IMG/VR virus record: IMGVR_UViG_3300032116_000001
Coordinates: 310,001 to 374,000 of that record
Length of the DNA stretch: 64,000 bases
Direction: 5' to 3' (one strand)
Below the pieces are notes generated by a model. That model saw only the letters and a list, made by a program, of their open reading frames with translations, did no database searches and was not told the origin of the DNA. The position numbers and the translations under genes are program-made. Of the stretch, positions 18,080-41,523 are shown piece after piece; position 1 is the stretch's first letter; each line of letters begins with the position of its first letter.

Positions 18080-19186
18080 TTAAACAGGAGTTAATTCATC
18101 CCATAATTTCCAATAAGGTCCAAATGGGATATATGGCTTAAAATCAAACATAAACTGGCGAAGTTCTCTCCAAAGCATCCAGAATTCATTGGCTTTTTCC
18201 GCAGACCATTTATTTTCGTAATCTAAGATATCATTAAGGGCCTGATTATATTCCTTGTTGAGTGGGTGCTTTGTGTCAAAAATATATTTATTTCCGTGTG
18301 CTTCGGCCTTCGCCTGCCACATTTGATTGAAATCATTACTTCTTGTCATTTGCATGATTGCTGATTCGCGTAAATCTTCCATCGCTGCATCTATTTCTGA
18401 TATTTTTTGTGCAAATGGCTCCACAGATGAACTTCCGCCAAGATAATCATCTCGTATCACTTTGAAAGTAGGTATGATTCTTTGCAAAAAGTAGCGTTGC
18501 ATTTCTTCAGCGGCAAATGCAATACCCTGAGAATGATCCAGCTGGTGACCGTGAAATTCTCTGAAATTTTCTCTCTTCTCATGAGGATTGATAACGGGGT
18601 CTTCTTGGGGAGGCGGTGGGTCCCAGGTTTTGACTTTGATTGCATGAATTCCATAAGGAGTCAGGTCTAATTCTTCCCCATTGGCAAAGGCTTTGCCCAT
18701 CGCCTCTAAGGCCTGATCTAATCTAACGTCTCTGTTAAGTTCATTCAAATCGTAATCATCTTGCTCCGAAGAAGATGCTTTCCGTTTACCAAAATTATTG
18801 TTTAAAACACTTAGGTCAACAATTTCCATAGTTGAGCCATCGGGGTCAGTTGTAATAATACCATCATAGCCATCTGCGATCAGAGCATTTGAAAGCTCTA
18901 AGCCAGTTTTATTATATCGGTCACGAAGTACTTGCTTCCAATTGTCTTTATCACTATACCCGCCTTGGCCCCAAGGAATGATTAAGGGATTGGTAAATTC
19001 AATTTCTCCGTGCTCCCAGCCCTCAACAGGAGAAGTGCCTTCCTCGATCTTTGTTACATATTTCCCATGTGGCTCAATATCTTGGCCATATGTATCTTTA
19101 AAATCAGGTGCGCTAATAGGATTCCGCTGGTACCTAATTTTGTAAGTATCTTTCTTTTGCTCTGACTGTGCCTTTTTATACCACAT
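18080..19186 (-). CDS. MWY-tagged protein, ART-like domain
   Basis: N-term MWYKKAQ; NPLII...GYDGII pattern seen in polyvalent-protein ADP-ribosyltransferase-like domains. Confidence 0.55.
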   Translation of the reverse strand: MWYKKAQSEQKKDTYKIRYQRNPISAPDFKDTYGQDIEPHGKYVTKIEEGTSPVEGWEHGEIEFTNPLIIPWGQGGYSDKDNWKQVLRDRYNKTGLELSNALIADGYDGIITTDPDGSTMEIVDLSVLNNNFGKRKASSSEQDDYDLNELNRDVRLDQALEAMGKAFANGEELDLTPYGIHAIKVKTWDPPPPQEDPVINPHEKRENFREFHGHQLDHSQGIAFAAEEMQRYFLQRIIPTFKVIRDDYLGGSSSVEPFAQKISEIDAAMEDLRESAIMQMTRSNDFNQMWQAKAEAHGNKYIFDTKHPLNKEYNQALNDILDYENKWSAEKANEFWMLWRELRQFMFDFKPYIPFGPYWKLWDELTPV

Positions 19187-19189
19187 GTG

Positions 19190-21757
19190 TTATCCTCCTT
19201 CGTATTTGTAATATGGATTTGCAGGTCTCCGACGAACACTGACTTCTTCAGAAGAATCTGGCCCTATGCTTTCTCTAAGCACCTTGCCAGTTTCTATGTC
19301 ATCAATAGAAACTGGCCCAATGTATTTTCGGGGATTGTGAGACTCAATGTAAAACTGCATTCTCTCAGCATCATCACCATAGGCATCATACAATCCTCTT
19401 GCTATTTCTTGAAGTGATGCTTTGTTCAGGTTATATGTTTCGACATGCTTGCCCTGCACCCGATGCCAACCAAAATTTTTAAGGGCGTATGTTCTGGGAT
19501 CGCGAAAACCATCCCAGTCTTTATCCATTTGTTCACGCGCTTCTTTGGGGTCTAATTTAGGGTTTTGTTTGAGTTTTTTCCAAAGCAAGTATTCATACAG
19601 GTCTGCATCTTCATGGGCGTTTTCAATCGCATCTCCATTTCCATTGTGAATACTTGTTAAATGCTGATTATAATCATCTAAGTCCCTAATATTATTTCTG
19701 AAAATATCATACGCATGCTCCCTTGTTATTGGCCACTCAGAATGATTTTCTATGTCAAAGCCAAGTCTATTGAGCATTTCCTCTTCGGCCAACATTTCAT
19801 GATTAATATCGCCAACATCACCGTCTGCATAAACAGCCTCGCCGTCTTTTAGCCACCATTCGTTAGCTGTGCGTTGCATTGACGTCACTCTTGTCATCAA
19901 CTGATCTGCCATGCGATACATACCCTTCTTATCACATGCGCTTGATAAAATCAACATTGATTGAATCTGATTGTAAAGGCTCCTCGGGATTTTATTTGCT
20001 TGGCGCAATTGTTTTCTTTTCGAATATTTCCATGTGCCATCGAATTTTTGATCAAACTTTGGATCATTCATATCCTGATCGCTTAAATCGTCAACGTGCG
20101 TAAATAATTTGGGGTAATCAGCAGAATTGATTTTCTTTATTTCAAGCAGTATTGGCAGTTGTTGGTATCCAGTTAATTCTTCAAACAAAGACATATATTC
20201 GTCATCTATAGACTCGCCCAACTGTGATTGGATTTCCATATCCAAGCCGTATGGAAGTGTACTGGTGATATATTGTTGATGTTCGGGGTTTGAATAAAGC
20301 TCAGCGGTGTTAATTCGATATTCTTTTTTATATTCATCAATACTTTTAATCGAATTATCATAAAGTGTTTTTACATTTGAAGTGTTCATCCACCAATATA
20401 TCCCACGTTCTTTATTGCTCTTGCTTTCCCAATCAGCAAAGTTTAATGCAAAGGGTTTGTGAATTTCATCTGGGTTTGCTATCATAGCAGACATATTTGC
20501 AATGTCAGATTTCATAGCAACTTCGATCATGGTTTTTGCAACGACATCCATGTTATTTGTGTACTTTATGTTTGTTGGCACTTGCTTTCGGGTTGTGGGG
20601 TCCCATTGCACATCAGTCAAGGCCTCGGAAACATTTTCGTATATTGTCTCAATGTCATTGTGTCTTATGTCTTTTTCAACTTGTTTATAAGGGATTCCAT
20701 AATCATCATCTACAACATCCTCGTCGTAATGAGCCCCGTAAGCGCTATCATATATTCCTGCCACAATAGATTCAATTTCCTTGCTACTACCCCAATCAAT
20801 TTCTTCTTCAAAGGGGCTTTGGCTCGACCATTCTGCGTCACCTAGATCACCGAACCACTCAGAAATTCGCTCCCGATCTTTTGAATCAGGGGTTTTATTA
20901 CCAAATCCCTTAATCTGTAGGATTGTATTGGTTTTTCCGTCCATTTCTATTGTTACGTGCGGCTTGTTGTCTGGGCTTCTGAGTGAAAATATTCTAATAT
21001 CTCCTCTTTCTACTTGATAACAATAAGAACCAACGCAGTGAGACATTTGATTGCCCTCTACAGCTAGGTCATTCTTATTTGTCACCATGGTCATAAACCA
21101 TCCGTCTTCCCATTGATACACTACACGCTCGTCAATAATTTCTCCATTTTCGTCTCTTTTTAATGGCGTGTAAATTTTACCTTCACCTTTACCAGCTATC
21201 ATCTGATGCCAATCGTTTGATTTCTCAAGTGCTTGAGAGAGGTTATAGCTCGTGATGTCTAGCCGTGGTGTTTCAATTTTTTGATTACGATACCAGTCGT
21301 ATATTTCCCCAAAAAGATTGTTGAAATTTTCATACACACCTTGACTATTCAAATTAGTAAACAATCTGTAAACGTATCCGCCATTTTCATCGGGCTCTAA
21401 TCTTAACTTTCTTAATTGAGTTAAGGCCCATTTTTGAAACAAATCATCGTATCTAGCCACGAGTTGTAATTCCATCGGAGTCCACGATGTTGCTTTGGAC
21501 TGGGGTACAAAAACAGATTGTTCAAGTGTATTCCAATCGAGGCTTGGGTCTTGGTTCAATCTGTTGACATAAATGGGCAGCTTGTCTTGTGGTAAATGCT
21601 TTAAATTTTCAATCACATCTGCTTTTGTTCCGCGAGCTTGCAAGTTGTCAATTAATTCTTGCAGACCAGCCACAATAACACGACCAAGCCTCATAGGCTT
21701 TGCGTCAGATGTTTTGTTTGCGCCAAGGACGCGAGAAAATTTAAAACTATGCTTCAT
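19190..21757 (-). CDS. PcfJ-like domain multi-module protein
   Basis: DLAVEGNQMSHCVGSYC...IFSLRSPDNKPHVTIEM...ILQIKG. Confidence 0.75.
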   Translation of the reverse strand: MKHSFKFSRVLGANKTSDAKPMRLGRVIVAGLQELIDNLQARGTKADVIENLKHLPQDKLPIYVNRLNQDPSLDWNTLEQSVFVPQSKATSWTPMELQLVARYDDLFQKWALTQLRKLRLEPDENGGYVYRLFTNLNSQGVYENFNNLFGEIYDWYRNQKIETPRLDITSYNLSQALEKSNDWHQMIAGKGEGKIYTPLKRDENGEIIDERVVYQWEDGWFMTMVTNKNDLAVEGNQMSHCVGSYCYQVERGDIRIFSLRSPDNKPHVTIEMDGKTNTILQIKGFGNKTPDSKDRERISEWFGDLGDAEWSSQSPFEEEIDWGSSKEIESIVAGIYDSAYGAHYDEDVVDDDYGIPYKQVEKDIRHNDIETIYENVSEALTDVQWDPTTRKQVPTNIKYTNNMDVVAKTMIEVAMKSDIANMSAMIANPDEIHKPFALNFADWESKSNKERGIYWWMNTSNVKTLYDNSIKSIDEYKKEYRINTAELYSNPEHQQYITSTLPYGLDMEIQSQLGESIDDEYMSLFEELTGYQQLPILLEIKKINSADYPKLFTHVDDLSDQDMNDPKFDQKFDGTWKYSKRKQLRQANKIPRSLYNQIQSMLILSSACDKKGMYRMADQLMTRVTSMQRTANEWWLKDGEAVYADGDVGDINHEMLAEEEMLNRLGFDIENHSEWPITREHAYDIFRNNIRDLDDYNQHLTSIHNGNGDAIENAHEDADLYEYLLWKKLKQNPKLDPKEAREQMDKDWDGFRDPRTYALKNFGWHRVQGKHVETYNLNKASLQEIARGLYDAYGDDAERMQFYIESHNPRKYIGPVSIDDIETGKVLRESIGPDSSEEVSVRRRPANPYYKYEGG

Positions 21758-22731
21758 GAGATATTCGATTTGCCCCCAGCTTTATCTGTGTATGTTGTGG
21801 TTTTTGGCTTCTTTCCATCGCCAGGCTCACGTTCCTTTCGCGATTTTTGCTTCATGCGCTCTTTGCGCTCCTTGTCAGACAGGCTTTTGGCTTTATTAGC
21901 GGGTGTGCAAACGGGCTTTTTGCCTTTGCTACTATCACTTCTGCCGCATTCTTCGTAGCCACCATCTTTTTTTGGTCGCCGTACATCCACCCACTTTTCG
22001 TTCTTAAACCAATCGTCTAAACCACCGTGGTTTTTGGCATATTTGTTGGTTATTAAATCTATAGCATCCGCAAGGTGGTGTTTGCCATAGCAATCGGCTG
22101 CCTGCGCAGTTTTTGCTAATTCATCTGACACGAAAGTGACATCATCGTTGTCGTCGTCATCGCCGTACCATTCCGTGCGTCGTTTTGCAGCCTTGTCAAA
22201 AGCGCCAAGACAATCACTTAAATATTCAGCTAATATAAAATCAGGCGTATCACTGTTGTTTTCTAGAGAAAATGAATTAATTAGGCTTTCAAGTTCTTTT
22301 CGGAAGGATTTATGATCGTTAGCTTCTTTAATGTCGTCGTCTGATTCCTGATCCCACTCTGATTGTGGTACTAAATTGATAATTTGAAATCCGACATCTG
22401 GCAATTCAAATGCAATGTGATTAGCGTCAATAGCTGCAGGAGCGTTCATTGCTTCATCAGGCATAGAATCAATAAATTCACCGATAGTGATCCATTCTTT
22501 TGAATCCCAATTTCCTTTCGGGTCTACGCGATAAAGATTTGAGTCATAATTGTTTAAAGCGTCTTCCAAGGTCATTTCGGACTCTATGACATCTTTGTGT
22601 TCCAAAAGTGATTTATTTTCTTTGGCAACACGAATAAACACATCATGAAGAGATGATGCTTCATGATGTAAACCAAGCCCTTCAATCAAAGACGCAGTTT
22701 GATGAATTTTTGCAAGCAAATTTTGATTCAT
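21754..22731 (-). CDS. modular phage hypothetical protein
   Basis: C-terminal WFKNEKWVDVRRPKKDGGYEECGRS...KPVCTP module recognised from phages; two copies of the helical tag. Confidence 0.7.
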   Translation of the reverse strand: MNQNLLAKIHQTASLIEGLGLHHEASSLHDVFIRVAKENKSLLEHKDVIESEMTLEDALNNYDSNLYRVDPKGNWDSKEWITIGEFIDSMPDEAMNAPAAIDANHIAFELPDVGFQIINLVPQSEWDQESDDDIKEANDHKSFRKELESLINSFSLENNSDTPDFILAEYLSDCLGAFDKAAKRRTEWYGDDDDNDDVTFVSDELAKTAQAADCYGKHHLADAIDLITNKYAKNHGGLDDWFKNEKWVDVRRPKKDGGYEECGRSDSSKGKKPVCTPANKAKSLSDKERKERMKQKSRKEREPGDGKKPKTTTYTDKAGGKSNIS

Positions 22732-22732
22732 T

Positions 22733-23299
22733 TTATTTACCCGTCATGTCCCCGACTGTTTTGCCTGCTTCCCACATTCGGCAAGACCAATATCTTGCCT
22801 TTGTCTTTGGGCCAGGATTATCACAATTATGTCGGGCGCGGAAGTTCTTTCGGCGCTCAGGATTGTCTCTTTTAATATCAGTCGTTGGATCGCCGAAATT
22901 AACTTTTTTAACCTTATCACCATCTTTGACATAGACAGAGAATTTTTTAGGCCCATCTGGGGTGCGAAAAGGCTTGTTTAGTGGTTTGTTGGACTTTGCC
23001 TGAGCTTCTCTTTGTGGAGATTTTTCCAATTTGATAATTTTATCAAAATAACCAATGTCAATAAGCCGAGGGTCATCAATGTATTTTTCCACCGCATCAT
23101 TAAACTCGGCTCTTGCTTCATAGTGTAGTGTTTCCACGTTTTCTTCAAAATCAAGCTCTTCTAACTCTTTTGAAGATGACCTTTGATTAGTTGTGTTGAC
23201 ATTTGCTATCCGACTCAAAACATCAGTAAGGATATCAGCTTCTTCGTGCAGGCCTAGTTTGTCCAATTCGTGTGCCACTTGAGCAATCTTTTTCAGCAT
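22733..23299 (-). CDS. modular phage hypothetical protein
   Basis: LNKPFRTPDGPKKFSVYVKD...FRARHNCD...ARYWSC module known from T4-like phages; start at MLKKIAQ. Confidence 0.75.
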   Translation of the reverse strand: MLKKIAQVAHELDKLGLHEEADILTDVLSRIANVNTTNQRSSSKELEELDFEENVETLHYEARAEFNDAVEKYIDDPRLIDIGYFDKIIKLEKSPQREAQAKSNKPLNKPFRTPDGPKKFSVYVKDGDKVKKVNFGDPTTDIKRDNPERRKNFRARHNCDNPGPKTKARYWSCRMWEAGKTVGDMTGK

Positions 23300-23300
23300 A

Positions 23301-23867
23301 TTAGTCCTCTTTTTTCCACTTACCGCCCTTAGCCTTGTATCGCTTACTTGCAGCCCCGAGTGCATAAGCTGATGGCCAGACGTCGTATTTGTCCTTGGCC
23401 CAATTTTTGCAGCTTTCCCAAAGCTCAGGATTAGTGGGGATATTTTCTTTTTCTTTAGTCTTGGCAACTCGAATAAAAACTTCATGCATTTGTGATGCTT
23501 CAGCTGTCATACCCCGATCCTCAAGCTCTTCAGTGATTTGAGAAATCTTTGTAAGGACGCTGGCCACAGCACTAGTTGTAATGTTTTCTTCATCTTCTTC
23601 GTCGTCGCTCTGCAGGTTGTCTTCAAGTTCAAAATAACGTCTTAAAATTAACAATTCTTTTCTTAACTGATCTATTTCTTCGGGATCGTAGATTCCGCGA
23701 TCAAGCCCCTGTAAACACTGATCGACTTCCATCATTCCTTCCCAGGGATAATGTGCCACACCTGTTGACGCAAAAGAGTACAATGCAGAACCTTGACCGC
23801 CATGCCAATCACTTGCAATGCGGCGAAGTTCCCCGATGCTATATCCACTAATATCAATTTCACCCAT
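23301..23867 (-). CDS. modular phage hypothetical protein
   Basis: WHGGQGSALYSFASTG module, helical tag, PTNPELW...VWPSAYA...YKAKGGKW module. Confidence 0.7.
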   Translation of the reverse strand: MGEIDISGYSIGELRRIASDWHGGQGSALYSFASTGVAHYPWEGMMEVDQCLQGLDRGIYDPEEIDQLRKELLILRRYFELEDNLQSDDEEDEENITTSAVASVLTKISQITEELEDRGMTAEASQMHEVFIRVAKTKEKENIPTNPELWESCKNWAKDKYDVWPSAYALGAASKRYKAKGGKWKKED

Positions 23868-24075: not shown

Positions 24076-25032
24076 AAAAGCTGCGACGGCACGGAAAGAC
24101 GTGCGAGAGCAGATGGTAGAAATGAGCTAGGTTTGCATCTCCCCGATAGAGGAAACTCATTTCATCTGGTAACCAATCCAGATCGTAGCTTTTCTCGGCG
24201 GCATGGCGTCGATAGATATCGCACTGCAAAGTGCAGAAAGAGATCAGGCCACTTCACGGTCTCTCGCCTTTCTTAAGAAAGGTCAACCATGCAAGCCCAG
24301 CACCTGTGAGCTTCAGGCCCAAAACCTGGAGATATGGTGGAAGATGGAGGGAGAAGAGTCAGCGTTATCGAGGCAACCGTGTAGATAACAGTTTGATCGC
24401 CGTTGCAAGCGGCAATGCCCACGCAAGCCATCGACATCTAAGGAGCGAAGGGTAGTTATATTTGTCCGAGGTTTAAGCAGCCAAGGGCTATATAGCACGA
24501 TGAAAGGCGAGGCGGAGAAGATGGACTTCAATGCCGTATTAGTCTTGAAATCGCGTTGAGTAACCTAGCAGGGTGAAAGACATGAGGCGTGTCATATTTT
24601 GTATTGTAAAGCAATATGAAGTGGCTGGACGCGCACGTCTCGCGTGAAGTTGCAAACATAGCTGAATGGTACAGCACTGTTATCTGAACAGTAGATTATT
24701 GGTTCAAGTCCAATTGTTTATTAAAAATGCAAAAGTCGCGTCCTGTGTTAATTGAAAGCAGCGTATTTCCTGAGTGTGGGACAGTCAGGAGCATCGAAGA
24801 TGGCAAGTCTAAGATGTATCGTAGGATTCAAGACGTAGTATCTTAGCGGATATTCACGGCAGTAAAATGTCGGCGGCAAGAAGATCACGTAGAAGATTAA
24901 CATTAAACTGGAAAAGCCACCAGTATAAAAAGGCCGCTGTGTGAAGGTACTGCTGGCAACAGTAGTGGACAATTAGGCAAAGCACATCGCAAGTGTGCTG
25001 TACTCCTAAAAAGCCGTCACAAATCAGTTTTT
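24076..25032 (+). ncRNA. large ornate ncRNA, GOLLD-like
   Basis: ~960 nt without a credible ORF; 5'/3' helices AAAAGCTG/CAGTTTTT and GACGGC/GCCGTC; many GNRA-capped stems; promoter motif at 23975-24000. Confidence 0.7.
24652..24722 (+). ncRNA. tRNA-like domain embedded in the large ncRNA
   Basis: GCT-GAATGGTAC-AGC, ACTGT-TATCTGA-ACAGT, ATTGG-TTCAAGT-CCAAT; no U33, no CCA. Confidence 0.7.
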
Positions 25033-25310: not shown

Positions 25311-26432
25311 TCAACTACCACACGCACAAGGCGTGTGGCTTGCTACAAGCTCAGCCTTCGGCTGAGCGAACAATAGGGAGGTTGACTGCTCCCCTAAAGA
25401 ACCTATATTCTTACTGGCATTAAAGTCTGCATTCTCCGTGTGTCCGCAGGACATGCAGAGAAACACAGTTTGACTTTTTCTATTGGCTTTTTCACAATAT
25501 CCGCACTCACTACACGTCGCAGACGTGTAGTGAGCAGGAACAATAGCTAAAGGAACTCCATAGAGTTCAGCTTTGTAAGTAATGTAGCTTCTGAGTTGGG
25601 CGAATGCCCAACTCATTCTTTGACTTCTATTCACTCGCCTGACCGTTACTCTTTTGTTGATATGCGTTAGCTCTTCGAGAGCCAACGCATATCCGAGTGC
25701 CTTTGCTTTTGTTACTAAAAGTTTTGAAATGACGTGATTTGTGTCTTTTCTAAATCTGGATTCTTTTTGTCCACATTTCTTGATTCTTCTTTTTGCAGAG
25801 CGTGTTCCACGCTTCTGCAATCTTTGTCGATGAGAGTGATATTGTTTTCTTTTCTTCTCGATGTGTTCTCCCGAGAACACATCTCCTAAAGAACTTACAG
25901 CGATTTGTTTCACTCCTAAGTCTATTCCTATAACGTCTTTGGCGTTATAGGCTGATTCTGTTGGAATTTCTAAAGTACAAAGAAGATAGAACTTGCCATT
26001 TTGATAAACTAAATCAACTTGCCCCTTTCTATATTTGAAGCGTTCTTTGTCGTATATTTGGATTGGGATATTGATTCTTCCATCATTAGTCCAGATATTA
26101 ACTAAATCAGTTCCTTTAAAAGTGATTACTCTGTCGTCGTAGACGACAGCAGAAGTCTTTTTGAAGTAATTTGGATTTTTGCTTCTTTTCTTTTTATATG
26201 TAGCGGTAACCACATCAATAGCCCTTATTATTAATTGAGAAGAGAAGCTTGGATGCGTTTCACGCATCCCATGATATGCATTTCTTTGCAATTGAACTTT
26301 ATTATAAGTTTCTGTTGAATGAGCTATTGTTGAAAGCTCATTACAAACATCATTGAAAGTATTCATAGTGCGCAGAAGCGCACTATGATGAATCTCATTT
26401 GTATTGAGTTTCACTTTCAGAGTGATATTCAC
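25311..26432 (-). CDS. tnpB: IS200/IS605-family TnpB with Zn finger
   Basis: GIDLGVKQIA, LALEEL, YTSATCSECG...CMSCGHTENADFNASKNI; 3' hairpin CTCAGCC-GAA-GGCTGAG and GTAGTTGAC end. Confidence 0.92.
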   Translation of the reverse strand: MNITLKVKLNTNEIHHSALLRTMNTFNDVCNELSTIAHSTETYNKVQLQRNAYHGMRETHPSFSSQLIIRAIDVVTATYKKKRSKNPNYFKKTSAVVYDDRVITFKGTDLVNIWTNDGRINIPIQIYDKERFKYRKGQVDLVYQNGKFYLLCTLEIPTESAYNAKDVIGIDLGVKQIAVSSLGDVFSGEHIEKKRKQYHSHRQRLQKRGTRSAKRRIKKCGQKESRFRKDTNHVISKLLVTKAKALGYALALEELTHINKRVTVRRVNRSQRMSWAFAQLRSYITYKAELYGVPLAIVPAHYTSATCSECGYCEKANRKSQTVFLCMSCGHTENADFNASKNIGSLGEQSTSLLFAQPKAELVASHTPCACGS

Positions 26433-26586
26433 ATTATGTGTTTATGTGTAATGCGTTCTAACACCTTCGTGATTTTCAATTATTTTTACATATTATCGTA
26501 AATTCGATTCCTCCTATAAAATTGTCGTCTTGGCGCAGACGTTAAACGCGCCTTTTCTGTTTTAAAAATTGTACAAGGAAAGTGTA

Positions 26587-28988: not shown

Positions 28989-28994
28989 AAAATC

Positions 28995-31795: not shown

Positions 31796-31831
31796 AAGGG
31801 CTGTTTTGCCACCACGCCGAATTCATTTAAT

Positions 31832-32719
31832 GTGTGGTATAGGTCAGCATCTGAGTCATTGAACAAATCGCGTTACAATCGCGATTTGTCTTCGATTATG
31901 CAAGACACTTTTTTCCACGGCACGGCTGAAAACTTTGAAGGTCCGCTTAAAGGCGGCGCATATGATAACATTATATGGACAGCAAATAATCCAGCTGTAG
32001 CACAAAATTACATTCCAGCTTCAGGAGCGCAATCGGGTTTTTCTCTTGACAAATGGGCTGAGGATCACGAGCCATATTCTCACTTTCGATATCATCGGGG
32101 CACGGACGTTGCACTTTTGAAACAAATGGGATATGGCTATCCTACTGATGAAGAATTATATCCGAATGGTGAGCTTAAAAACTATCGTATAAAAGATCGC
32201 CATGCAACACATGGAGAGATGCGGGAATATTTAAGATCGCTGGGATACGACCCAGAAGAAGATTTTTGGATTAACACAGAATATGTTGATGGTGACGAGA
32301 TTGTCCGCCCCAAGAATTACAAAATGCCAGGCAGGCTTTTTATTGGGCATCCTCAAAAGCCTTTGAATATTTTTGATACTACTGAGTATTTAGAAGGCGA
32401 TGAATCTAACCCAGCTTATCACATGCATGATGTTTTTAATCTTATTAAAGGCAAGGGATATCACGGCGTTAAAATACCAGATTTTGCTCAGTCAAAAAAC
32501 TGGGGAAATGTGCATCACGAAAGTGTTGGAATTTTCCCCGAATATGTTGATCATTTAAACTGGGATGTTATACCAGCGGTAAATTTTGACTGGGGAGATA
32601 ATCTTTTAGGTGTTTATTCGACGCCTGACTGGGATATTCATCATAAGCAACAGATACTTTCTGCTCATCAAAGTGGCGAAAAAGTTGATCCTCGATTATT
32701 AGACTGGGCTCAAAATTAA
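31832..32719 (+). CDS. MWY-tagged protein, ADP-ribosyltransferase-like
   Basis: GTG start MWYRSAS; FFHGT...IWTANNPAVAQNY...GYHGVKI. Confidence 0.55.
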   Translation: MWYRSASESLNKSRYNRDLSSIMQDTFFHGTAENFEGPLKGGAYDNIIWTANNPAVAQNYIPASGAQSGFSLDKWAEDHEPYSHFRYHRGTDVALLKQMGYGYPTDEELYPNGELKNYRIKDRHATHGEMREYLRSLGYDPEEDFWINTEYVDGDEIVRPKNYKMPGRLFIGHPQKPLNIFDTTEYLEGDESNPAYHMHDVFNLIKGKGYHGVKIPDFAQSKNWGNVHHESVGIFPEYVDHLNWDVIPAVNFDWGDNLLGVYSTPDWDIHHKQQILSAHQSGEKVDPRLLDWAQN

Positions 32720-33519
32720 ACGATTGACTGTCTTTCTGTTTTCTTTTCCCTTGTTGATTTTAACATTCTCCAGTTCTCTTTAATAAATTGAACAGCTTCT
32801 GAATATGTTTTTCCAGCTACTAATTCTCTTCCTGTATAATCCTCAACCATCCAGTTACCATAAACTTCTTTTTTCATCGGGAAAATCATTCCCTTGTTTA
32901 CGCTTGGCCCCCAAACAATAACTTGGGATTGCTGATCACCATGATGATCGAAAAGAATTCCTCCGCTATAAAACACAACTGCTTCGTTTCCATACTGCCC
33001 TGTAAAAGCAGTGTGCTCAGCGTCATTTGAATCCACTTGAAATGCAAAATTATAACCTGGGTCTTCCATGCGGTCTTCCTTCCAGGTTGATAGATGAACT
33101 CCCTCAATGTCAGGATGACCATATTTAAATCCTTCATTTTCGATATCTCTTGCATTTTCCGTGAAATGCACAAGCCAGTCGGGCCTGAGCGCTCTCTGAT
33201 ATTCTAATGAATTATATGCAGGACTTTCGTATGCATTTGAATTATCATATTGGTATCTTTCGCGAGAGTCATTTAAAAAACTAACAAATGCTTTGCGATA
33301 ATCATCAGGCGCATTGTTCAACCATGTATAGCCTCGTTCATCTGGGTAATCTTCCACGTCCTCCATGATGCTTGGGTCTAATCGGTATTCTTCGTGAGAA
33401 TCCAAAAAATTATCCACAAGAAAGGCATAATCATAAGGATTGGTTCCCTCTCGTACATAATCTCTCAAATAAGCAAGCTCTGTGCTATATCCCGCTTTTT
33501 TGATGCTTCTGTACCACAT
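32716..33519 (-). CDS. MWY-tagged hypothetical protein
   Basis: MWYRSIKKAG; WLVHFT...GYNFAF. Confidence 0.65.
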   Translation of the reverse strand: MWYRSIKKAGYSTELAYLRDYVREGTNPYDYAFLVDNFLDSHEEYRLDPSIMEDVEDYPDERGYTWLNNAPDDYRKAFVSFLNDSRERYQYDNSNAYESPAYNSLEYQRALRPDWLVHFTENARDIENEGFKYGHPDIEGVHLSTWKEDRMEDPGYNFAFQVDSNDAEHTAFTGQYGNEAVVFYSGGILFDHHGDQQSQVIVWGPSVNKGMIFPMKKEVYGNWMVEDYTGRELVAGKTYSEAVQFIKENWRMLKSTREKKTERQSIV

Positions 33520-33628
33520 AATGTTTTTTTCTAAGAATGTTTATTTTTAGCCTATAATTATCTAGGCTGATTCAATTTTTTAATTGAATTTAACATGTTA
33601 TAAGCTGTTATATCAGCTTGGGTTAATT

Positions 33629-34519
33629 ATGTGGTACAAACTTGCTCAGTTGGCATCTGTTGACGCTCCAGTTCTTGGAAACCAATCTGGCCCCGCTCAT
33701 TTAGGAAGCGGCCAGGAAATGCTTATTGAAGCAGGCGGAGATAGTGTTCAAGAAGTTGTTAGTAATTTTATGAATAGCAGCCAGCCTGTATTCTTTAGAG
33801 ATTCAAATGGCCAGCAATATCTGATTATTCATGGCTCGCCCGCACAAGACGGAGCTATGTATTTTGATGGTGGGGCAGCGGGGTCAATTAGGCATGATGA
33901 ATTAGGCGATTGGATGCGCACTCAAGGATATGATCCAGGTGCCACGAAAGTGATAGCATGTCATGGTGGCCAAATTATGACGCTAAACTCACCTGGCATT
34001 ACCCCTGCCTTCGATTACACTGGTCAACTTGAGATTGCCGCGCCAAATGATGGCAGCGGAGATTTCCTTTCAATTAGAGGAGCCTCTGCAAGATACGCGC
34101 TTTCCAAGGAGGGACGAGGCAAAGTTGACATAGATGGTATCAAGGTTTGGATAGAATATCCCAAAGGCTCAACTCGATCAGGCAAGGGCAAGGACGGCAA
34201 AGAATGGAGCCGAAAGATGGAGTGTGATTATGGCCGAATCATGGGAACAGTAGGGGCTGATGGCGATGCTATTGATATGTTCCTTGGGGGAAATCTTGAC
34301 GCCGATAAAGTTTTTATCGTAGATCAACTGAATTCTGATGGCGACTTTGATGAGCATAAATGTGTTATGGGGTGCGACACCTTAAAGCAAGCAAAAGAAT
34401 TATATCTCTCCAATTATCCAAAAGACTGGAAATGCGGGAAAGTTACAGAAATGAACATTTCTGAATTTAAGAAGTGGCTTAAAAAAGGAGACAAAAAAGT
34501 CCCAGCATCATCGGAGTAA
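33629..34519 (+). CDS. MWY-tagged protein with C-terminal inorganic-pyrophosphatase-like domain
   Basis: MWYKLAQ; IEYPKGSTRSG...DYGRI.GTVGADGDAIDMFLG...DEHK. Confidence 0.75.
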   Translation: MWYKLAQLASVDAPVLGNQSGPAHLGSGQEMLIEAGGDSVQEVVSNFMNSSQPVFFRDSNGQQYLIIHGSPAQDGAMYFDGGAAGSIRHDELGDWMRTQGYDPGATKVIACHGGQIMTLNSPGITPAFDYTGQLEIAAPNDGSGDFLSIRGASARYALSKEGRGKVDIDGIKVWIEYPKGSTRSGKGKDGKEWSRKMECDYGRIMGTVGADGDAIDMFLGGNLDADKVFIVDQLNSDGDFDEHKCVMGCDTLKQAKELYLSNYPKDWKCGKVTEMNISEFKKWLKKGDKKVPASSE

Positions 34520-34521
34520 TT

Positions 34522-36084: not shown

Positions 36085-36114
36085 TTGTAATTTTAAACAG
36101 AAAAAGAGACTATC

Positions 36115-36861
36115 ATGAATCGTATCGCTGTCATAAAGTCATTAATTGCGATTGCTAACTCCTTGGAAGATCAGGAATTATCCTCTGAGGCCTCGCGATT
36201 AGATGCAGTAATTAGAAAAATCGCCAGCATTGATGATGAAGGGGGCCTTCAAGGTGATTTTAATATATCCCCTTCCATTATTAATTCTTTAGGCGGCGAT
36301 AGTGCAATGAATGAGCAAAATTCATCTGCCATGCAGCAAGCCGAGCGAATGATTAACGAGGCTGCAGGAGTCCCGTCTATGCGAGAGTTAGCTGTACGAT
36401 GGAGTGTTTCGCCAGGGTCAGCCCTTTGGATTTATGCTCAAACTGGCGAAGTAAATGATCTTGTACATCGCAAGGCGCTTTTAAAGGAAATTTCAGAAGC
36501 CATTGATAAAAATCATGACCCTCAAGAGGCTATTTTGCTCAATCAATTTTATAGCTTGATTTTGAAAACACTGCCAGTTGCAATAGGTCAAAACAAAGTT
36601 AATGTAAAGTCGGTAAATCATAGTCGCAAACCAAGTGATATTGGGGGAGAAGATATATTCTTAACTTTCACCACTGAAGATGATCATGTTGGCGGCATAC
36701 AAATGCATAAATCAGACAAGGGTCAAATTCAATTTGTTGGATCGGGTTATTTTAAAGATGGCAAATTTATGTCATGGGGATATAATGCACAAGACAGCAG
36801 CCTGCTTGCCAACGCACTTAACTCTTTTCTTATGGAGCAAGAAAGACAATCATATAGGTAA
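36115..36861 (+). CDS. hypothetical protein, tandem paralog A
   Basis: N-terminal ~50 aa similar to the next gene. Confidence 0.7.
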   Translation: MNRIAVIKSLIAIANSLEDQELSSEASRLDAVIRKIASIDDEGGLQGDFNISPSIINSLGGDSAMNEQNSSAMQQAERMINEAAGVPSMRELAVRWSVSPGSALWIYAQTGEVNDLVHRKALLKEISEAIDKNHDPQEAILLNQFYSLILKTLPVAIGQNKVNVKSVNHSRKPSDIGGEDIFLTFTTEDDHVGGIQMHKSDKGQIQFVGSGYFKDGKFMSWGYNAQDSSLLANALNSFLMEQERQSYR

Positions 36862-36871
36862 AAAAACAAAC

Positions 36872-37663
36872 ATGGATCGCATAGCTACAATCAAATCTTT
36901 AATTAAAATCACAAACGCACTGGAAAAAGGTGGGTTTTATAAAGAGGCCCAAACTCTTGACTATGTGATTCGTCGTATTGCCAGTATTGAGAACGAAGGA
37001 GGGCTTAATGGAGAATATGATATTTCTCGGGCCATTCTTAATGACATAGAAAACCCTAAGCTTTCCGACGATTTACCAAATTTTGATACTGCAGAAAACA
37101 TGATCGAAGAATTGCCAGATAGATTCTTGCAGGACAACATATTTGACGAAGAGGATGAAGAAATTGACCCAGAAGAAAAAGAATTAAGACTTCTGGCAAG
37201 TCGATGGAGCACAGGAAAGGAATCCGCTTTACACGGGTTTGCTGTTTCTGGCATGATCGTAGATTTAGATGATCATGCTAGGGCTCTTGAAGAGATTGAT
37301 CGAGCGCTGGATTTAAACACTGATCCAGAAGAATATATCAGATTAAGAGACCTTGAGGCACATTTAATAATGTCTATTCCTCTCATAATCCCATTTATTG
37401 GCTATGATAGCATCAAAGACATCAAAATACAACCTCGGAGCACGGAAAAAGGTCTTGACGTGATGTTTTTCTTTAGAACTGATCGAGGTTTTCGTGGTGT
37501 GCTTAATTGCAGCGTTGACCATCAAGAAAATATTATCCCGCGTTTTACGGGGCTTGAAGATAACGGTGAATACAAATCAATGCATTATTCCAACGATCAA
37601 ATTAAACAATTGGCTGAAGCTTTTTTTAGAAGATTACACATTGAAACAGGGGGAGATATATAA
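36872..37663 (+). CDS. hypothetical protein, tandem paralog B
   Basis: start reassigned to MDRIATIKSL. Confidence 0.7.
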   Translation: MDRIATIKSLIKITNALEKGGFYKEAQTLDYVIRRIASIENEGGLNGEYDISRAILNDIENPKLSDDLPNFDTAENMIEELPDRFLQDNIFDEEDEEIDPEEKELRLLASRWSTGKESALHGFAVSGMIVDLDDHARALEEIDRALDLNTDPEEYIRLRDLEAHLIMSIPLIIPFIGYDSIKDIKIQPRSTEKGLDVMFFFRTDRGFRGVLNCSVDHQENIIPRFTGLEDNGEYKSMHYSNDQIKQLAEAFFRRLHIETGGDI

Positions 37664-37665
37664 TC

Positions 37666-38031: not shown

Positions 38032-38032
38032 G

Positions 38033-40057
38033 ATGAAATCATTAGCTATTTCGCGTGTGCAAACGATGCTAAGAAGTGCATCGAGTTTAGATAAAATTGG
38101 CAAGTATGCAAGTGCTGATATTTTATCTAATGCTGCGCATCATATGTTAAAAAAGATTTCTCAAACAAACATGTCAACAAGAATTCCTGCTGATTCATAC
38201 ATGGAAAAATATATGGATCAATACAAGGATTATTTTGGAGAGCCAACTATTGATAAAGATGGTTCTCCAAAATATTATACGGATCAATATGATGATATAG
38301 ACCATTCTTATGTCTTTGCGCTGAAAAATAACCCAACCGCGATAGATAATCTTAGACCAAGTGAATTAAAATACTGGCATAAAAGACAGACGCAGATGCA
38401 TGATTACGAGCCAGATCATCAAACGTGGGATCATTTAAAGCATTCTTTTGAAAGAGGAACTCCCGAATATGATCATTATCTTAGGCTTTTGTCTCGCGAT
38501 CCTGTTTACGAAAATATCAATCCCGATGATTTGATTAATTATGTGAAATCACAGCAAGATCAATATAGCCGTGGAGACTGGAGCAATCCAACGGACTGGA
38601 ATGTTGCTCATTCTCTTCTTCGAGCTGCTAATCACTATTTAATACATGATAATTTTGATTATAAAAATTATGTTTCTGACATCGAAAGTCCTTACAATCT
38701 TACAAGCCCCTTAAATCAGCAGCAAGTTGATGATCGCCGAGCCCTTAATTTAGTAATGGAACGAGATAAACCCATGGTCAAACTGCCTCCTACAGAGGCA
38801 TACAGACTGGGCGACGGATCATTGATCCATTTTAACATGGGTCGCAGAGACACTATATTAAGACATTTTACAAAAGATGATGTCGATAAGCCTTACGACG
38901 AACTAATTGCGCGAAGCCTGTTAAGCAATGATAAAGACATAGCAAGCGAAAAGCTCAACAGCATTAAAGAAAAAATGAAAAATATTTATCGGATGACCCC
39001 CGAAAACACAGAAAATTATTATCATTATCTGAAAGTTTTCGCTATGTATCCTAATTTAATCGGAACATCATTAAAAAACATTGATGAAATCGTATCTAAT
39101 CTAAATGAAGGGCAAGACGGGTCAAATGACATGGGAAGACTCATGGTTGTCTTTAATAAAAATTGGCGACAATGGGTGGCTAAATTTAATAATGATGTTC
39201 ACGAAGCTGCGCAAATCTTGCCAATGGGCAGTACACAGGACTTGCGCGGACTAGGCGATTTGCTAATGCAGTGGTATGGCAAGGTCAAAACTACAGATTT
39301 GTACACAATAGCCTCATATTGGCCAAATCTTACCGCAGAAGATAAATCACTTCCTATTGATCAACTAGCTGATCGAGTTCGATATTACAAAGTCAGGCAG
39401 CTTTTTAAAGCAGAAAGCATTAATCATCCTTCTTTTGCAATCGAGGCAGCCAAATGGTGGCAATCTGCCGAGGGCGACGAGGATGATGCATGGCTTAACA
39501 TTGATGAAGATGATGACACAGAGCCGTTCGATTATGAAAACATTGAAAAATTGTTTATCGACTCTCAAAATGTACCCCTCCCTGTTTGGGCTTCATACAC
39601 AGCAAGTATTGGTGGGTTGACTGGAAGATTTTTGCCTCGTTCAGACGTCCGCGGGTTGTTCCTGGGTCAATACAGCAATTCCTGTCAACATCCCTGGGGA
39701 GTTGGAGCAAGTTGCGCAATTCACGGCCAAACCTCGCCGCATGGAGCATTTTTTGTTGTTGAAGACCAGAAAGGCAACATCATCGCCCAAAGTTGGGTGT
39801 GGGAAGATTATGACGGAGATGTTGTTTTTGATAATGTCGAGGCGCTTGGCATTGGCGACAGAAGAATGCCAATAGTTCAGTCAATTTATAAAACTGTAGC
39901 GGAACAAATGGAAGGCCGTATAGTTCACATAGGAACGGGCGGAAGCGACTTGGATTTGGAACCATTTAAAGACACAGACTTTCGACTCGCGCCAAATGAT
40001 TATTATGGGTATCGAGACTCCACAAGACAAAAAATACTCGCAGACAACACTTATTAA
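38033..40057 (+). CDS. large protein with C-terminal PcfJ/GNAT-like domain
   Basis: LFLGQYSNSCQH...FFVVEDQKGNIIAQSWVW...FDNVE. Confidence 0.6.
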   Translation: MKSLAISRVQTMLRSASSLDKIGKYASADILSNAAHHMLKKISQTNMSTRIPADSYMEKYMDQYKDYFGEPTIDKDGSPKYYTDQYDDIDHSYVFALKNNPTAIDNLRPSELKYWHKRQTQMHDYEPDHQTWDHLKHSFERGTPEYDHYLRLLSRDPVYENINPDDLINYVKSQQDQYSRGDWSNPTDWNVAHSLLRAANHYLIHDNFDYKNYVSDIESPYNLTSPLNQQQVDDRRALNLVMERDKPMVKLPPTEAYRLGDGSLIHFNMGRRDTILRHFTKDDVDKPYDELIARSLLSNDKDIASEKLNSIKEKMKNIYRMTPENTENYYHYLKVFAMYPNLIGTSLKNIDEIVSNLNEGQDGSNDMGRLMVVFNKNWRQWVAKFNNDVHEAAQILPMGSTQDLRGLGDLLMQWYGKVKTTDLYTIASYWPNLTAEDKSLPIDQLADRVRYYKVRQLFKAESINHPSFAIEAAKWWQSAEGDEDDAWLNIDEDDDTEPFDYENIEKLFIDSQNVPLPVWASYTASIGGLTGRFLPRSDVRGLFLGQYSNSCQHPWGVGASCAIHGQTSPHGAFFVVEDQKGNIIAQSWVWEDYDGDVVFDNVEALGIGDRRMPIVQSIYKTVAEQMEGRIVHIGTGGSDLDLEPFKDTDFRLAPNDYYGYRDSTRQKILADNTY

Positions 40058-41523
40058 TTATTCGATGATGTTAGCTGCTTTCTGGCGTCATATAATTCTC
40101 TAAATTTTCTAATTTTTTCTCTGACTTGTTGATTATTTATTTTTAATCCGTTAATCAAAATTGTCAGGAATCTTGCGCGTAAATCGTCACGTTCCCATGA
40201 TGACATTTTGCGGTCGAGAAGTGAGTCAAACTGGCTTTGCCATTTTTCCATTTCCTCTTCATACTCATCTTCGTCTTCAAAATTATTCTCTGGCTCCTCT
40301 GGCATTAAATAATATATTTCGTCTTTCAATTCTTTTTCTGCCTTGTTTTTATAATCTTCAAAAAAACTGTCAACCTCATCGTATGAAGTTGTGTAATTCC
40401 AATAATATTTATCGAACTTACGCTTTTCGGCTAACTGTTCATCTCTTTTTGCTAAAATCTTTAGTAAACTATAAGCAGCATCATCAGCATAACGATCTTC
40501 TAACTGTCCCCACGTATTTTCAAATTTGTCCAGAGTGTTTTCCACTGCATATAATACATCTAATTTAGTGAAATCAGTGTCTTGAGCCAGTCCATATTGA
40601 TCTATTTCTGCCCCGTATTGATCGATATGATCGGCAACAGATTTCATGTCAACTCCGTCTAAATTAAATTCTTTTGTAATCAGCGATTCTTCCCATTTTT
40701 GCACTGGCAGATTTTCAACCCACTCTTTAATATATGATTGGTAATCTTCGCTTAGCACACGATTGGAGTGCCCCTTAATTTCAGAAATCTCCCCATATTC
40801 GTTCATCCTTATGGTCGCTACTGGATGATTTGTTTCGTCTCTTAGGGAAAATATTTGGTATTTCCCTTCTTTTACATCATCGCAGTATGTTCCAACGCAG
40901 TGATTCATTTTATTTCCCTCCGCTCTAAGATCATTCTCAGATGTGACTAACTGCATCGTGTACCCATCATCGTAATCGTAAACTACATTTGCGGGACTAA
41001 TTGGCTCATACATTAATCCAGAACCCTTGCCAGCCATCATTGTGTGCCATTCTTCGGACATTTTGACAGCCGAGGCCCAATCATAAGAAGAGAGCTGGAA
41101 TCTCGATTGTCCTTGGTCATCGAGGGGGTGACGTGCGATTTCGTAATTATACCAATCTTTAATCGCATCTGCCTGATTAATAATTTCCAGATTGTCAATG
41201 GCATATTTTCTACCATTGGGGTCCAACCTCATTTTCTTTACTTGAATCAAAAGCCATTTTGCAAATTGTGGAATATTTTGATAGCGCATGTAAAGATTAG
41301 ATTCAAAATTGCTTTGCTGATTTTGTTCAGTTTTGATATTAGCAAGATTTTGAATTTCTTCTATCGTGGCGTTTGGTTTGTTTCTGACAATATTCACATA
41401 AATTTTTTGGTGATCGGGGTTCTGATCACCAATCCACGCAATAACATGATCGGGAACACCAAGTGACTTTAAATATTCCTCTTGGGTCCCCGATATGCAA
41501 ACTTTTGCGTATTTATACCACAC
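40054..41523 (-). CDS. MWY-tagged PcfJ-like domain protein
   Basis: MWYKYAK; DLRAEGNKMNHCVGTYC...IFSLRDETNHPVATIRM; paralog of 19190-21757. Confidence 0.75.
   Translation of the reverse strand: MWYKYAKVCISGTQEEYLKSLGVPDHVIAWIGDQNPDHQKIYVNIVRNKPNATIEEIQNLANIKTEQNQQSNFESNLYMRYQNIPQFAKWLLIQVKKMRLDPNGRKYAIDNLEIINQADAIKDWYNYEIARHPLDDQGQSRFQLSSYDWASAVKMSEEWHTMMAGKGSGLMYEPISPANVVYDYDDGYTMQLVTSENDLRAEGNKMNHCVGTYCDDVKEGKYQIFSLRDETNHPVATIRMNEYGEISEIKGHSNRVLSEDYQSYIKEWVENLPVQKWEESLITKEFNLDGVDMKSVADHIDQYGAEIDQYGLAQDTDFTKLDVLYAVENTLDKFENTWGQLEDRYADDAAYSLLKILAKRDEQLAEKRKFDKYYWNYTTSYDEVDSFFEDYKNKAEKELKDEIYYLMPEEPENNFEDEDEYEEEMEKWQSQFDSLLDRKMSSWERDDLRARFLTILINGLKINNQQVREKIRKFRELYDARKQLTSSNN

Follow-up and report, generated by a model that had tools for sequence, protein, structure and literature searches.

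A short peptide tag, for which the sequences suggest the consensus M-W-Y-[K/R]-hydrophobic-A-Q, or M-[N/S/T]-W-Y-K-x-A-Q in a second group of contigs, was found at the N-termini of accessory proteins encoded by uncultivated phages. The tag is real, conserved at the peptide level, specific to the N-terminus, portable and widespread, and its cargo is of the polyvalent-protein type. On the best-supported reading, which is quite possible, it loads anti-host proteins into the virus particle; the virion as destination, the receptor and any cleavage are the parts of this reading that we infer.

Six tagged genes in the 64-kb window

The window analysed here is a 64-kb stretch of a 378,848-bp contig from a huge uncultivated phage. 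The six tagged starts reported by the first-pass annotation were all recovered, each as [ATG/GTG]-TGG-TAY-[Lys/Arg], and are listed below together with one further match at the DNA level.

18080..19186, minus strand: tagged gene 1, 368 aa, ATG start, MWYKKAQ; tag codons at 19166-19186
31832..32719, plus strand: tagged gene 2, 295 aa, GTG start, (M)WYRSAS
32716..33519, minus strand: tagged gene 3, 267 aa, ATG start, MWYRSIK
33629..34519, plus strand: tagged gene 4, 296 aa, ATG start, MWYKLAQ; C-terminal InPase domain PF18823
34522..36084, plus strand: tagged gene 5, 520 aa, ATG start, MWYKQAQ
40054..41523, minus strand: tagged gene 6, 489 aa, GTG start, (M)WYKYAK; PcfJ domain PF14284
56943..56954, minus strand: DNA match GTGTGGTACAGA inside ORF 56700-57590, excluded from the tag set

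The DNA pattern RTGTGGTAYARR matched seven times in the window, versus a mean of 0.11 and a largest count of 1 in 100 dinucleotide-preserving shuffles; the seventh match (56954, minus strand) is not a start, because it lies 212 codons inside its ORF. At the protein level, six M-W-Y-[KR] gene starts were seen among 62 genes versus 0.006 expected from the window's own amino-acid composition (Poisson P ~1e-16), and internal WY[KR] occurred at background (3 seen vs 1.8 expected). For the gene at 31832, the JGI caller picks a downstream ATG, giving 273 aa instead of 295 aa; the support for the GTG start is the motif itself and a stop codon in frame, 12 codons upstream. At 33629 the longest ORF begins with TTG at 33584, and the ATG of MWY is used by two of three public gene calls. 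A Sec or Tat signal peptide, defined as a basic N-region followed by a hydrophobic core of at least 10 residues or by a twin-Arg motif, was not found in the window proteins: in all six, polar residues follow the tag.

The first-pass annotation had proposed that the conservation is at the peptide level, and this was borne out, as codons vary freely and the upstream DNA is unrelated. Among 78 distinct tagged starts, the Lys/Arg position uses AAA, AAG, AGA, CGA, AGG and CGT, the Ala uses all four of its codons, Tyr is encoded by TAT in 53 and TAC in 25, and the start codon is ATG in 71, GTG in 6 and TTG in 1. When positions 2 and 3 were freed (M..[KR].A[QK]), MWY was still present in 62 of 65 starts, and after the tag no residue was conserved at a fixed distance. 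The alternative named in that annotation, a shared DNA element (ATGTGGTA...), was considered here as a boundary at which genes or cassettes would recombine and be shuffled; it could draw on the cassette-like gene arrays and on N-terminal modules swapped exactly at the tag boundary. We hold it to be very improbable: every degenerate site varies synonymously, Lys and Arg alternate across codon families, three start codons are in use, the flanks are heterogeneous and without conservation, and in a control scan of genome contigs the same DNA pattern was not at gene starts in bacterial genomes. The codon statistics largely refute such an element, and the upstream sequences also speak against it.

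Distribution, cargo and exchange of the tag

The tag occurs far outside this genome, as a scan for tagged starts in IMG/VR confirmed. The pattern scans of IMG/VR returned ~210 tagged ORFs in ~100 families, from uncultivated phages, with the form MWYKxAQ and, in the second group of contigs, MNWYKxAQ; in some contigs up to 16 consecutive genes are tagged. Matches lay at ORF starts in ~45 of 55 cases for MWYKxAQ and in 43 of 47 for MNWYKxAQ, compared with only 9 of 120 at start-like positions in bacterial and archaeal genomes, and the matches in bacterial genomes behave like chance. In an internally duplicated protein, the second copy retains the body and has YANK where the first has MNWYK. A search for a cultured phage carrying the tag found none, and no published description of the motif was found in the literature.

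The downstream bodies are unrelated, as had been claimed: the window proteins fall into six different BLAST families and those elsewhere into ~100. The description of the set as a toolbox is likewise apt for a portable N-terminal tag shared by so many families in many uncultivated phages. The cargo comes largely from the "polyvalent protein" repertoire, with InPase (a pyrophosphatase) and PcfJ domains in the window and ART-PolyVal, NUDIX+HAD_SAK_2, Peptidase_M23, AAA_33, GH108, Tad6 (an anti-Thoeris protein), GNAT, 2H-SAK, DUF5661 and kinases elsewhere. Tagged proteins carry one or two recognisable domains; the peptidoglycan hydrolases among them (M23, GH108) have no signal peptides, and the tagged set also includes a complete glucose-6-phosphate dehydrogenase (G6PD).

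The domains that dominate the cargo are found elsewhere inside polyvalent or internal virion proteins delivered by the particle. The InPase domain of gene 4 is of the polyvalent-protein type and has 146-aa relatives consisting of the tag and InPase alone. Its PHROG matches bear the names minor head protein, virion structural protein and DarB-like, and this domain was predicted to be packaged (PMC5512222). Gene 5 matches the C-terminal part of gp34 from pelagiphage HTVC028P, whose gene is located among those for internal virion proteins. Among the best 150 of 9,609 representatives of its homologues, 135 are 1,000 aa or longer (median 2,501) and contain the domain internally, and the only full-length stand-alone forms among the matches listed (P0034, P0035 and P0178) all begin MWY[KR]. 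A Pfam scan of ten giant homologues of gene 5 recognised LPD22 or ART-PolyVal in two and no domain in the other eight. Gene 2 is possibly an ART-PolyVal-like ADP-ribosyltransferase, which we treat as a lead only, and gene 3 gave weak leads to ADP-ribosyltransferase (ART)-fold families. The ART family maps inside proteins of 1,362 and 1,479 aa that the phages Tunturi_5 and Mx1 encode within their structural modules. Homologues of gene 6 begin MWY[KRH] or MNWY.

The portability of the tag was evident from domain rearrangement, after which it remains at the extreme N-terminus. Gene 1 comprises the tag, an N-terminal module A ('DNWKQVL..DGYDGIVT..EIVDL') and a C-terminal module B; module A is C-terminal in other proteins, some with ART-PolyVal, and module B stands alone behind the tag in relatives (P0002, P0003; starts MWYRKAS or MWYRRAN). 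Moreover, a longer helical N-terminal module can take the place of the tag on orthologous bodies: among orthologues 53-73% identical, some have MWYR.AQ and others a helical module of 29 aa, with the junction at the same AQ, and GH108 lysozymes 49% identical show the same swap. The first-pass annotation had missed both this exchange and the spread of the tag beyond this genome. Longer modules can also be internal or C-terminal. With low confidence, the longer module is predicted to form two 14-residue helices and a linker. For a tagged paralogue family, AlphaFold modelled the domain confidently and gave residues 1-30 no secondary structure (pLDDT 53-60); the tag is a short flexible extension before otherwise unrelated accessory proteins. 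Five window genes next to the tagged ones carry the longer module, and an untagged PcfJ paralogue adjoins gene 1.

19190..21757, minus strand: untagged PcfJ paralogue, 855 aa
21754..22731, minus strand: longer helical N-terminal module, MNQNLLAKIHQTASLIEGLGLHHEASSLHDVFIRVAK
22733..23299, minus strand: begins with the longer module, 188 aa in the JGI call, MLKKIAQVAHELDKLGLHEEADILTDVLSRIAN
36115..36861, plus strand: longer N-terminal module, MNRIAVIKSLIAIANSLEDQELSSEASRLDAVIRKIAS
36872..37663, plus strand: longer N-terminal module, MDRIATIKSLIKITNALEKGGFYKEAQTLDYVIRRIAS
38033..40057, plus strand: longer N-terminal module, 674 aa, ..LRSASSLDKIGKYASADILS..

Possible destinations of tagged proteins

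The loading of tagged proteins into the particle is suggested by the cargo: in other phages, many of its domains are joined within giant polyvalent or internal virion proteins, which are carried in the particle and pass into the host along with the DNA. A stand-alone effector would then need its own signal to enter the assembling head; the invariant Trp-Tyr may dock on a component of the head interior (scaffold or core, portal, or inner capsid surface), and hydrophobic-Ala-Gln may mark the tag boundary and, if the L/I-x-E end in T4 is a guide, perhaps a maturation-protease site. Internal proteins of T4 share only a 10-residue N-terminal targeting sequence, which places them in the core of the prohead to be injected (PMC3012670, PMC9026906) and ends in the prohead-protease site L/I-x-E, cut after Glu (PMC9026906). 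As in IPI, IPII and IPIII, a short N-terminal peptide is the sole feature common to anti-host proteins that are otherwise diverse and evolve fast, and the genes are located in variable regions; the end of the tag is also built like the end at which the T4 sequence is processed. The tag differs in having 6-7 residues instead of 10, in occurring in ~100 families of many uncultivated phages instead of a few T-even proteins, and in alternating with a longer helical module. The tag contains no Glu and so lacks a T4/phiKZ-type cleavage site.

The polyvalent proteins (Iyer et al. 2017, PMC5512222) share with the tagged set InPase, ART-PolyVal, NUDIX, GNAT, peptidoglycan hydrolases, kinases and LPD-type domains, but string 2-15 disparate domains on one polypeptide, whereas tagged domains are separate proteins of 100-700 aa, each with its own tag. 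The signal of P1 DarB, an anti-restriction polyvalent protein, resembles the tag in its N-terminal location: its first 30 residues suffice for capsid targeting, more than 9 and at most 30 residues being needed (PMC9024508). No consensus exists among P1 Dar proteins (PMC9024508), unlike the sharp consensus that many proteins share here.

Encapsulin cargo-loading peptides, microcompartment encapsulation peptides and the coat-binding helix-turn-helix of P22 scaffolding protein are short terminal peptides or helical hairpins with a linker, mostly C-terminal, that route diverse cargo inside a protein shell. The longer module, with its two helices and linker predicted at low confidence, would be of similar build, but no sequence similarity to these signals is known.

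The first-pass annotation had gone further, to T4-like head loading with removal by the prohead protease, and this part is conjectural: there is no Glu-type site, no head gene could be linked to the tag, the tagged genes have nucleotide-metabolism genes around them, and one tagged protein is G6PD. Within the 64-kb window no head gene was recognised, and no structural gene adjoining tagged genes could be identified. In related loci the tagged genes adjoin ribonucleotide reductase, clamp loader, PurA, dUTPase and sigma-factor-like genes, not head genes. Caution about virion loading is warranted because G6PD, an unexpected cargo for a virion, is tagged and because tagged genes lie among metabolic genes; 16 consecutive tagged proteins would also be a large load if all were packaged. 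A less probable reading than virion loading, which we nevertheless take seriously, is that the WY tag and group-specific longer helical modules form a general protein-sorting code of a very large group of uncultivated and often huge phages. It would send well over a hundred families, metabolic enzymes included, to a single destination by way of a receptor with no relation to the scaffold-core mechanism of T4. Such a destination might be a pocket for cargo loading on the inside of the capsid, like that of encapsulins, or a phage compartment within the cell.

The same metabolic cargo would fit a tag by which accessory proteins dock at a shared hub or compartment of the infected cell and not in the virion, a reading that we consider rather unlikely. 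At the same low likelihood, the hub could be a factory for replication or translation, a site on the membrane, a shell made of protein, or a multi-enzyme complex, the last amounting, again doubtfully, to the non-covalent reassembly of an 'exploded' polyvalent protein. Such docking would accommodate tagged G6PD, the position of tagged genes among metabolic and replication genes, the transmembrane or hydrophobic helix directly after the tag in two tagged proteins (2 of ~100 families), and the exchange of the tag with longer modules that may be internal or C-terminal, as expected of a generic docking element. However, no candidate hub was found, tagged M23 and GH108 proteins without signal peptides fit particle delivery better than a cytoplasmic site, and the cargo families are those of virion-delivered giants. 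A processing or turnover signal, either an N-terminal degron or the site of a phage peptidase timing early effectors, appears improbable. A Peptidase_M24 gene (methionine-aminopeptidase family; 26569-27372) near the tagged cluster and a subtilisin-like Peptidase_S8 gene directly upstream of a 16-gene tagged array (L236) point towards it, as does the aromatic-aromatic-basic-hydrophobic N-terminus of the tag, which we take to resemble bacterial ClpS and ClpX recognition motifs. Against it, N-degrons accept Leu, Phe, Trp or Tyr, whereas Trp and Tyr are here not substituted by Phe or Leu; the Met or Met-Asn ahead of Trp is not known to be removed by ordinary methionine aminopeptidase; and tagged cell-wall hydrolases are left unexplained. 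A ClpS-type N-degron would present an exposed, interchangeable Leu, Phe, Trp or Tyr, and the retention of Trp-Tyr in the relaxed matches and the residues preceding Trp speak against one. In a scan with the M24 protein, the sole match was the window's own contig. The strict position of the tag at the ORF start, the lack of a Shine-Dalgarno sequence in most tagged genes and the overlapping stop and start codons in arrays would suit a nascent-peptide or initiation-region effect that boosts or couples the translation of packed accessory genes, but conserved amino acids with free synonymous sites, untagged replication and metabolic neighbours in the same loci, and the C-terminal or internal positions open to the functionally equivalent longer module make this explanation still more improbable than a degron.

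Implications for phage delivery and sorting

Were the tag a loading signal, a motif of seven residues would reveal, directly from sequence, which proteins thousands of uncultivated phages inject or co-deliver, yielding a catalogue of candidate anti-defence and host-takeover proteins, mostly without known function. Giant polyvalent proteins and arrays of small tagged proteins would then be two solutions to one delivery problem, and the minimal portable tag would offer a practical means of packing foreign proteins into phage particles, a use to which the signals of T4 and P1 are already put. The general sorting code, if true, would constitute a new targeting system and not a variant of T4 capsid targeting. 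Should the destination be other than the virion, the tag nonetheless defines a step of sorting during phage infection that had gone unnoticed, and either way, which phage proteins travel or act together becomes testable by proteomics.

Six tagged genes and the phage that carries them

All six ORF starts at which the first-pass annotation had read a shared N-terminal peptide (the WY tag, MWY[KR]xA) read as it described, and the six proteins fell into six separate BLAST families, so the claim that the tagged bodies are unrelated holds.

Tagged genes in the window
18080-19186 (-), gene 1: tag followed by modules A and B
31832-32719 (+), gene 2: possible ART-PolyVal-like enzyme
32716-33519 (-), gene 3: weak ADP-ribosyltransferase-fold leads alone
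33629-34519 (+), gene 4: InPase, PF18823
34522-36084 (+), gene 5: full-length stand-alone form of a domain found inside giant proteins
40054-41523 (-), gene 6: PcfJ, PF14284

Starts encoding M-W-Y-[K/R] were observed six times among 62 genes, against 0.006 expected from the window's own amino-acid composition (P ~1e-16), and WY[KR] inside the window proteins was at background (3 seen vs 1.8 expected). At the DNA level, RTG-TGG-TAY-ARR gave 7 matches vs 0.11 expected from shuffles. The seventh match (56954, -) was ruled out as a tag, as it lies 212 codons inside an ORF; that ORF (56700-57590, -) contains an internal VWYRSGVIHRDNDLPAII...NGNQKWYQ stretch that looks like a repeat motif and accounts for the match. 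The GTG start of the gene at 31832 differs from the start in the public gene call, and the longest ORF of the gene at 33629 opens at an upstream TTG, the MWY ATG being used in two of three public gene calls.

The window, positions 310001-374000 of the 378,848-bp IMG/VR contig IMGVR_UViG_3300032116_000001 (G+C of the window 40%), is part of an uncultivated huge phage genome. Its PHROG matches are to families of large phages, and a megablast of 14 kb against GenBank phages returned no match, no phage there being close to it. It carries 15 tRNA genes, 12 of them clustered within 4 kb, and in the cluster region some apparent ORFs are translated tRNA DNA.

Other features of the window
2947-6932, tRNA genes
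14731-14804, tRNA gene
24652-24722, tRNA gene
62471-62545, tRNA gene
7218-8396 (+), IS605 OrfB/TnpB gene (Cas12f-like TNB domain)
25311-26432 (-), IS605 OrfB/TnpB gene (Cas12f-like TNB domain)
26569-27372 (+), Peptidase_M24 gene (methionine aminopeptidase family), between a TnpB gene and the tagged cluster

One of the two TnpB genes sits at the edge of the tagged region. A 94.7-kb tag-bearing contig (L072) encodes at 20216-21184 (-) a protein whose domains are N_methyl and SBP_bac_10 (DUF1559), a pilin-like type abundant in Planctomycetota, which is a weak lead to the host group.

Conservation and spread of the tag in IMG/VR

A scan of relatives, as proposed in the first-pass annotation, revealed many more tagged genes in IMG/VR loci. 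The pattern ATG-TGG-TAY-AAR-NNN-GCN-CAR (MWYKxAQ) was found in 55 loci, with ~45 matches at ORF starts followed by long ORFs, and its GTG version in 13 loci, with two real starts, both in contigs with ATG-tagged genes. As a chance control, the same ATG pattern was run against 596 Gb of bacterial and archaeal genomes; at least 120 matches were obtained, 9 of the 120 listed were start-like, and none of these resembles the phage tagged families. Prophage carriers were also sought among these genome contigs, and the matches listed were all chance-like.

Across 78 distinct tagged starts, the start codon was ATG in 71, GTG in 6 and TTG in 1, and tyrosine was encoded by TAT in 53 and TAC in 25. Lysine or arginine at position 4 used AAA, AAG, AGA, CGA, AGG and CGT, and alanine at position 6 all four of its codons. 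The 30 bases upstream are AT-rich and mutually unrelated, and most lack a Shine-Dalgarno sequence. With positions 2 and 3 left free (M..[KR].A[QK]), MWY was still present in 62 of 65 starts, indicating that Trp and Tyr are effectively invariant. These results demonstrated that the tag is a peptide, as the first-pass annotation had suggested; the DNA element it had named as the alternative is, with such varied codons and unrelated upstream DNA, extremely improbable.

Searching the fetched loci (about 20 kb around each match) for [ATG/GTG/TTG]-TGG-TAY at ORF starts identified ~100 tagged ORFs in 33 families, including six tagged genes in succession (L008) and eight in 22 kb (L072). Homologues of the window PcfJ protein then led to a shifted form, MNWYKxAQ, whose scan added 37 loci and 69 families; of its 47 matches, 43 were at ORF starts. 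The longest arrays comprise 16 consecutive tagged genes (L218 and L236). Of the 1,466 genes called across the fetched loci, ~210 bear the tag; the contigs come from freshwater samples, and many of them are 250-550 kb long. For cultured relatives, tblastn with the tagged families returned domain-level matches in untagged giants or nothing, and no tagged ORF was found in the sampled regions of Dfl-JY45, HTVC028P, Tunturi_5 and Mx1.

Cargo, portability and exchange with longer modules

The tagged families elsewhere include ART-PolyVal, NUDIX+HAD_SAK_2, Peptidase_M23, AAA_33 kinase, HTH, GNAT (one of them weak), GH108, Tad6 (a Thoeris inhibitor), cREC_REC, 2H-SAK, DUF5661, methyltransferase, PolyA_pol-type nucleotidyltransferase, HATPase and HicA-like proteins. 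Gene 2 shares with ART-PolyVal proteins the short motifs FHGT and LRSLGYD alone, and pairwise BLAST was not significant. PDB sequence searches, run with genes 1 and 5 as well as three large tagged proteins, yielded a single match: the C-terminus of one of these five resembles a nucleotidyltransferase head domain. A complete glucose-6-phosphate dehydrogenase (G6PD_N + G6PD_C) starts with MNWYKWAQ (L198 7691-9013, equal to L200 11652-12971); it is the sole clear central-metabolism enzyme found with the tag, and the adjacent 2-hydroxyacid dehydrogenase is untagged. Other neighbours without the tag encode ribonucleotide reductase, clamp loader, PurA, dUTPase, a sigma-factor-like protein and thioredoxin reductase. 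In a tagged PcfJ protein (P0032, L198 10001-12175), residues ~330-720 form a long C-terminal array of ~35-residue repeats with the pattern ..PP.WA..WA...L.....P.EW...I...

The tag is portable and N-terminus-specific. Gene 1 consists of the tag, module A and module B, and its relatives P0002 and P0003 of the tag and module B. Module A (residues ~20-130 of gene 1) is an unannotated domain with the motif FGQDIEP.G.Y ... NPL.I.WG ... DNWKQVL ... DGYDGIVT ... EIVDL; in other proteins (P0004-P0021) it is C-terminal, in some after ART-PolyVal. Many of these begin with another conserved sequence, MPTLADIYSAI..., which may be an additional group-specific leader. Gene 4 (296 aa) has an insert of ~150 aa between tag and InPase domain, and 146-aa relatives consist of tag and domain. 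Among orthologues 53-73% identical, some open with MWYR.AQ and others with a 29-residue module (M..KLLKIA.KLD....YKLADK...IAQ), the junction with the body being the same Ala-Gln in both, and this exchange recurs in GH108 lysozymes of 49% identity.

In L236, tightly packed consecutive MNWYK-tagged genes span 4959-12882, eleven of which form one paralogous family of ~125-260 aa. In a tandem-duplicated module protein, the body motif IKTALPV is kept in the internal copy, and YANK stands there in place of the first copy's MNWYK. The AlphaFold model of this paralogue family showed residues 1-30 without secondary structure (pLDDT 53-60) and a confident domain after residue 35; a PDB fold search with the model found no significant match (best E 0.012, TM 0.34).

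The MWY genes of the window are interleaved with genes whose products open with a helical module of ~30-35 residues.

Carriers of the longer modules
21754-22731 (-), window: N-terminal
22733-23299 (-), window: N-terminal
23301-23867 (-), window: internal
36115-36861 (+), window: N-terminal
36872-37663 (+), window: N-terminal
38033-40057 (+), window: N-terminal
47301-47837 (+), window: weaker match
1661-2125 (-), L051: same module
10816-11418, L013: same module
780-3782, L015: C-terminal
5104-5502, 5524-5994, 6839-7261, 18634-19038 and 20320-21165, L198: KISKSEW module
L200, L210, L215, L220 and L234: KISKSEW module, further loci

The helical module interleaved with the MWY genes reads roughly LLKIA..LD..G.Y.LADKL...IAQ. 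This LADK-type module occurs on unrelated proteins and replaces the MWY tag on orthologous bodies; its usual position is N-terminal, with some copies internal and others at the very C-terminus of ~1,000-aa proteins. The MNWYK contigs have their own longer module, KISKSEW..IG...GW[IM]K.AQ, absent from the MWYK loci, and it closes with residues similar to the short tag. A hydrophobic-Ala-Gln ending is frequent in the two longer modules and in the two short tags alike. Neither longer module matches a Pfam family; one model, of the LADK-type module and of low confidence (pLDDT 49), showed two 14-residue helices followed by a linker, and a protein-atlas look-up of this module returned unnamed viral clusters alone.

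Candidate functions and the link to virion-delivered giants

The closest precedents of the WY tag are the T4 capsid-targeting sequence, a 10-residue N-terminal peptide that is the sole feature common to diverse internal proteins (PMC3012670, PMC9026906), and the N-terminal signal of P1 DarB, whose first 30 residues suffice for capsid targeting (PMC9024508). By analogy, the Trp-Tyr would dock on a component of the head interior, and the hydrophobic-Ala-Gln may be where the tag ends and perhaps where it is cleaved. We put the proposal that the tag is a virion-loading signal at slightly short of even probability. It is weakened because no head gene is linked to the tag (PHROG and Pfam searches of the neighbours in the window and related loci turned up none for portal, capsid, scaffold or protease), and because the tag is devoid of Glu; in T4, targeting falls to residues 4 and 7, and the L/I-x-E protease site is made up by residues 8 and 10 (PMC9026906). 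The tagging of G6PD and of two proteins with a membrane helix, and the runs of up to 16 successive tagged genes, weaken it further. A fixed cleavage motif after the tag was ruled out, as positions 8-12 lack conservation.

Among the other readings, an intracellular docking or compartment signal is unlikely. A turnover or processing signal is quite unlikely: the Peptidase_M24 gene in the window and a subtilisin-like Peptidase_S8 gene (L236 3776-4864) immediately upstream of the L236 array speak for it, whereas the invariant Trp-Tyr, preceded by Met or Met-Asn, argues against a simple N-degron, and a scan for Peptidase_M24 relatives co-occurring with the tag returned the window's own contig alone. 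A translational effect is very unlikely.

The cargo also connects to giant proteins. The InPase domain, predicted to be packaged (PMC5512222), matches PHROGs annotated as minor head protein, virion structural protein and DarB-like. For gene 5, matches were found to the C-terminus of gp34 of Pelagibacter phage HTVC028P, whose gene is flanked by those for 'internal protein A' and 'internal virion protein', and to an interior stretch of a protein of 2,387 aa in Dolichospermum phage Dfl-JY45. In a search of 1.84 billion representative proteins, 9,609 homologues of gene 5 were obtained; among the best 150 of these, 135 are at least 1,000 aa long (median 2,501) with the domain internal, and the sole full-length stand-alone forms (491-526 aa) all start with MWY[KR]. 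A Pfam scan of ten of these giants found LPD22 in one, ART-PolyVal in one and no recognised domain in eight. For the tagged ART family, matches in Tunturi_5 and Mx1 fall within larger proteins (1,362 aa and 1,479 aa) that belong to the structural modules of these phages.

The motif was not found in the literature searched, no Pfam model covers it, and the polyvalent-protein paper (PMC5512222) does not mention it. Targeting peptides at the N-terminus of phage effectors are a known kind of thing; what appear to be new are the tag sequence, how widely it occurs, its alternation with longer modules and its link to polyvalent proteins. The simplest reading of this link is that in these phages the polyvalent toolbox is 'exploded' into single proteins that carry one address label apiece.
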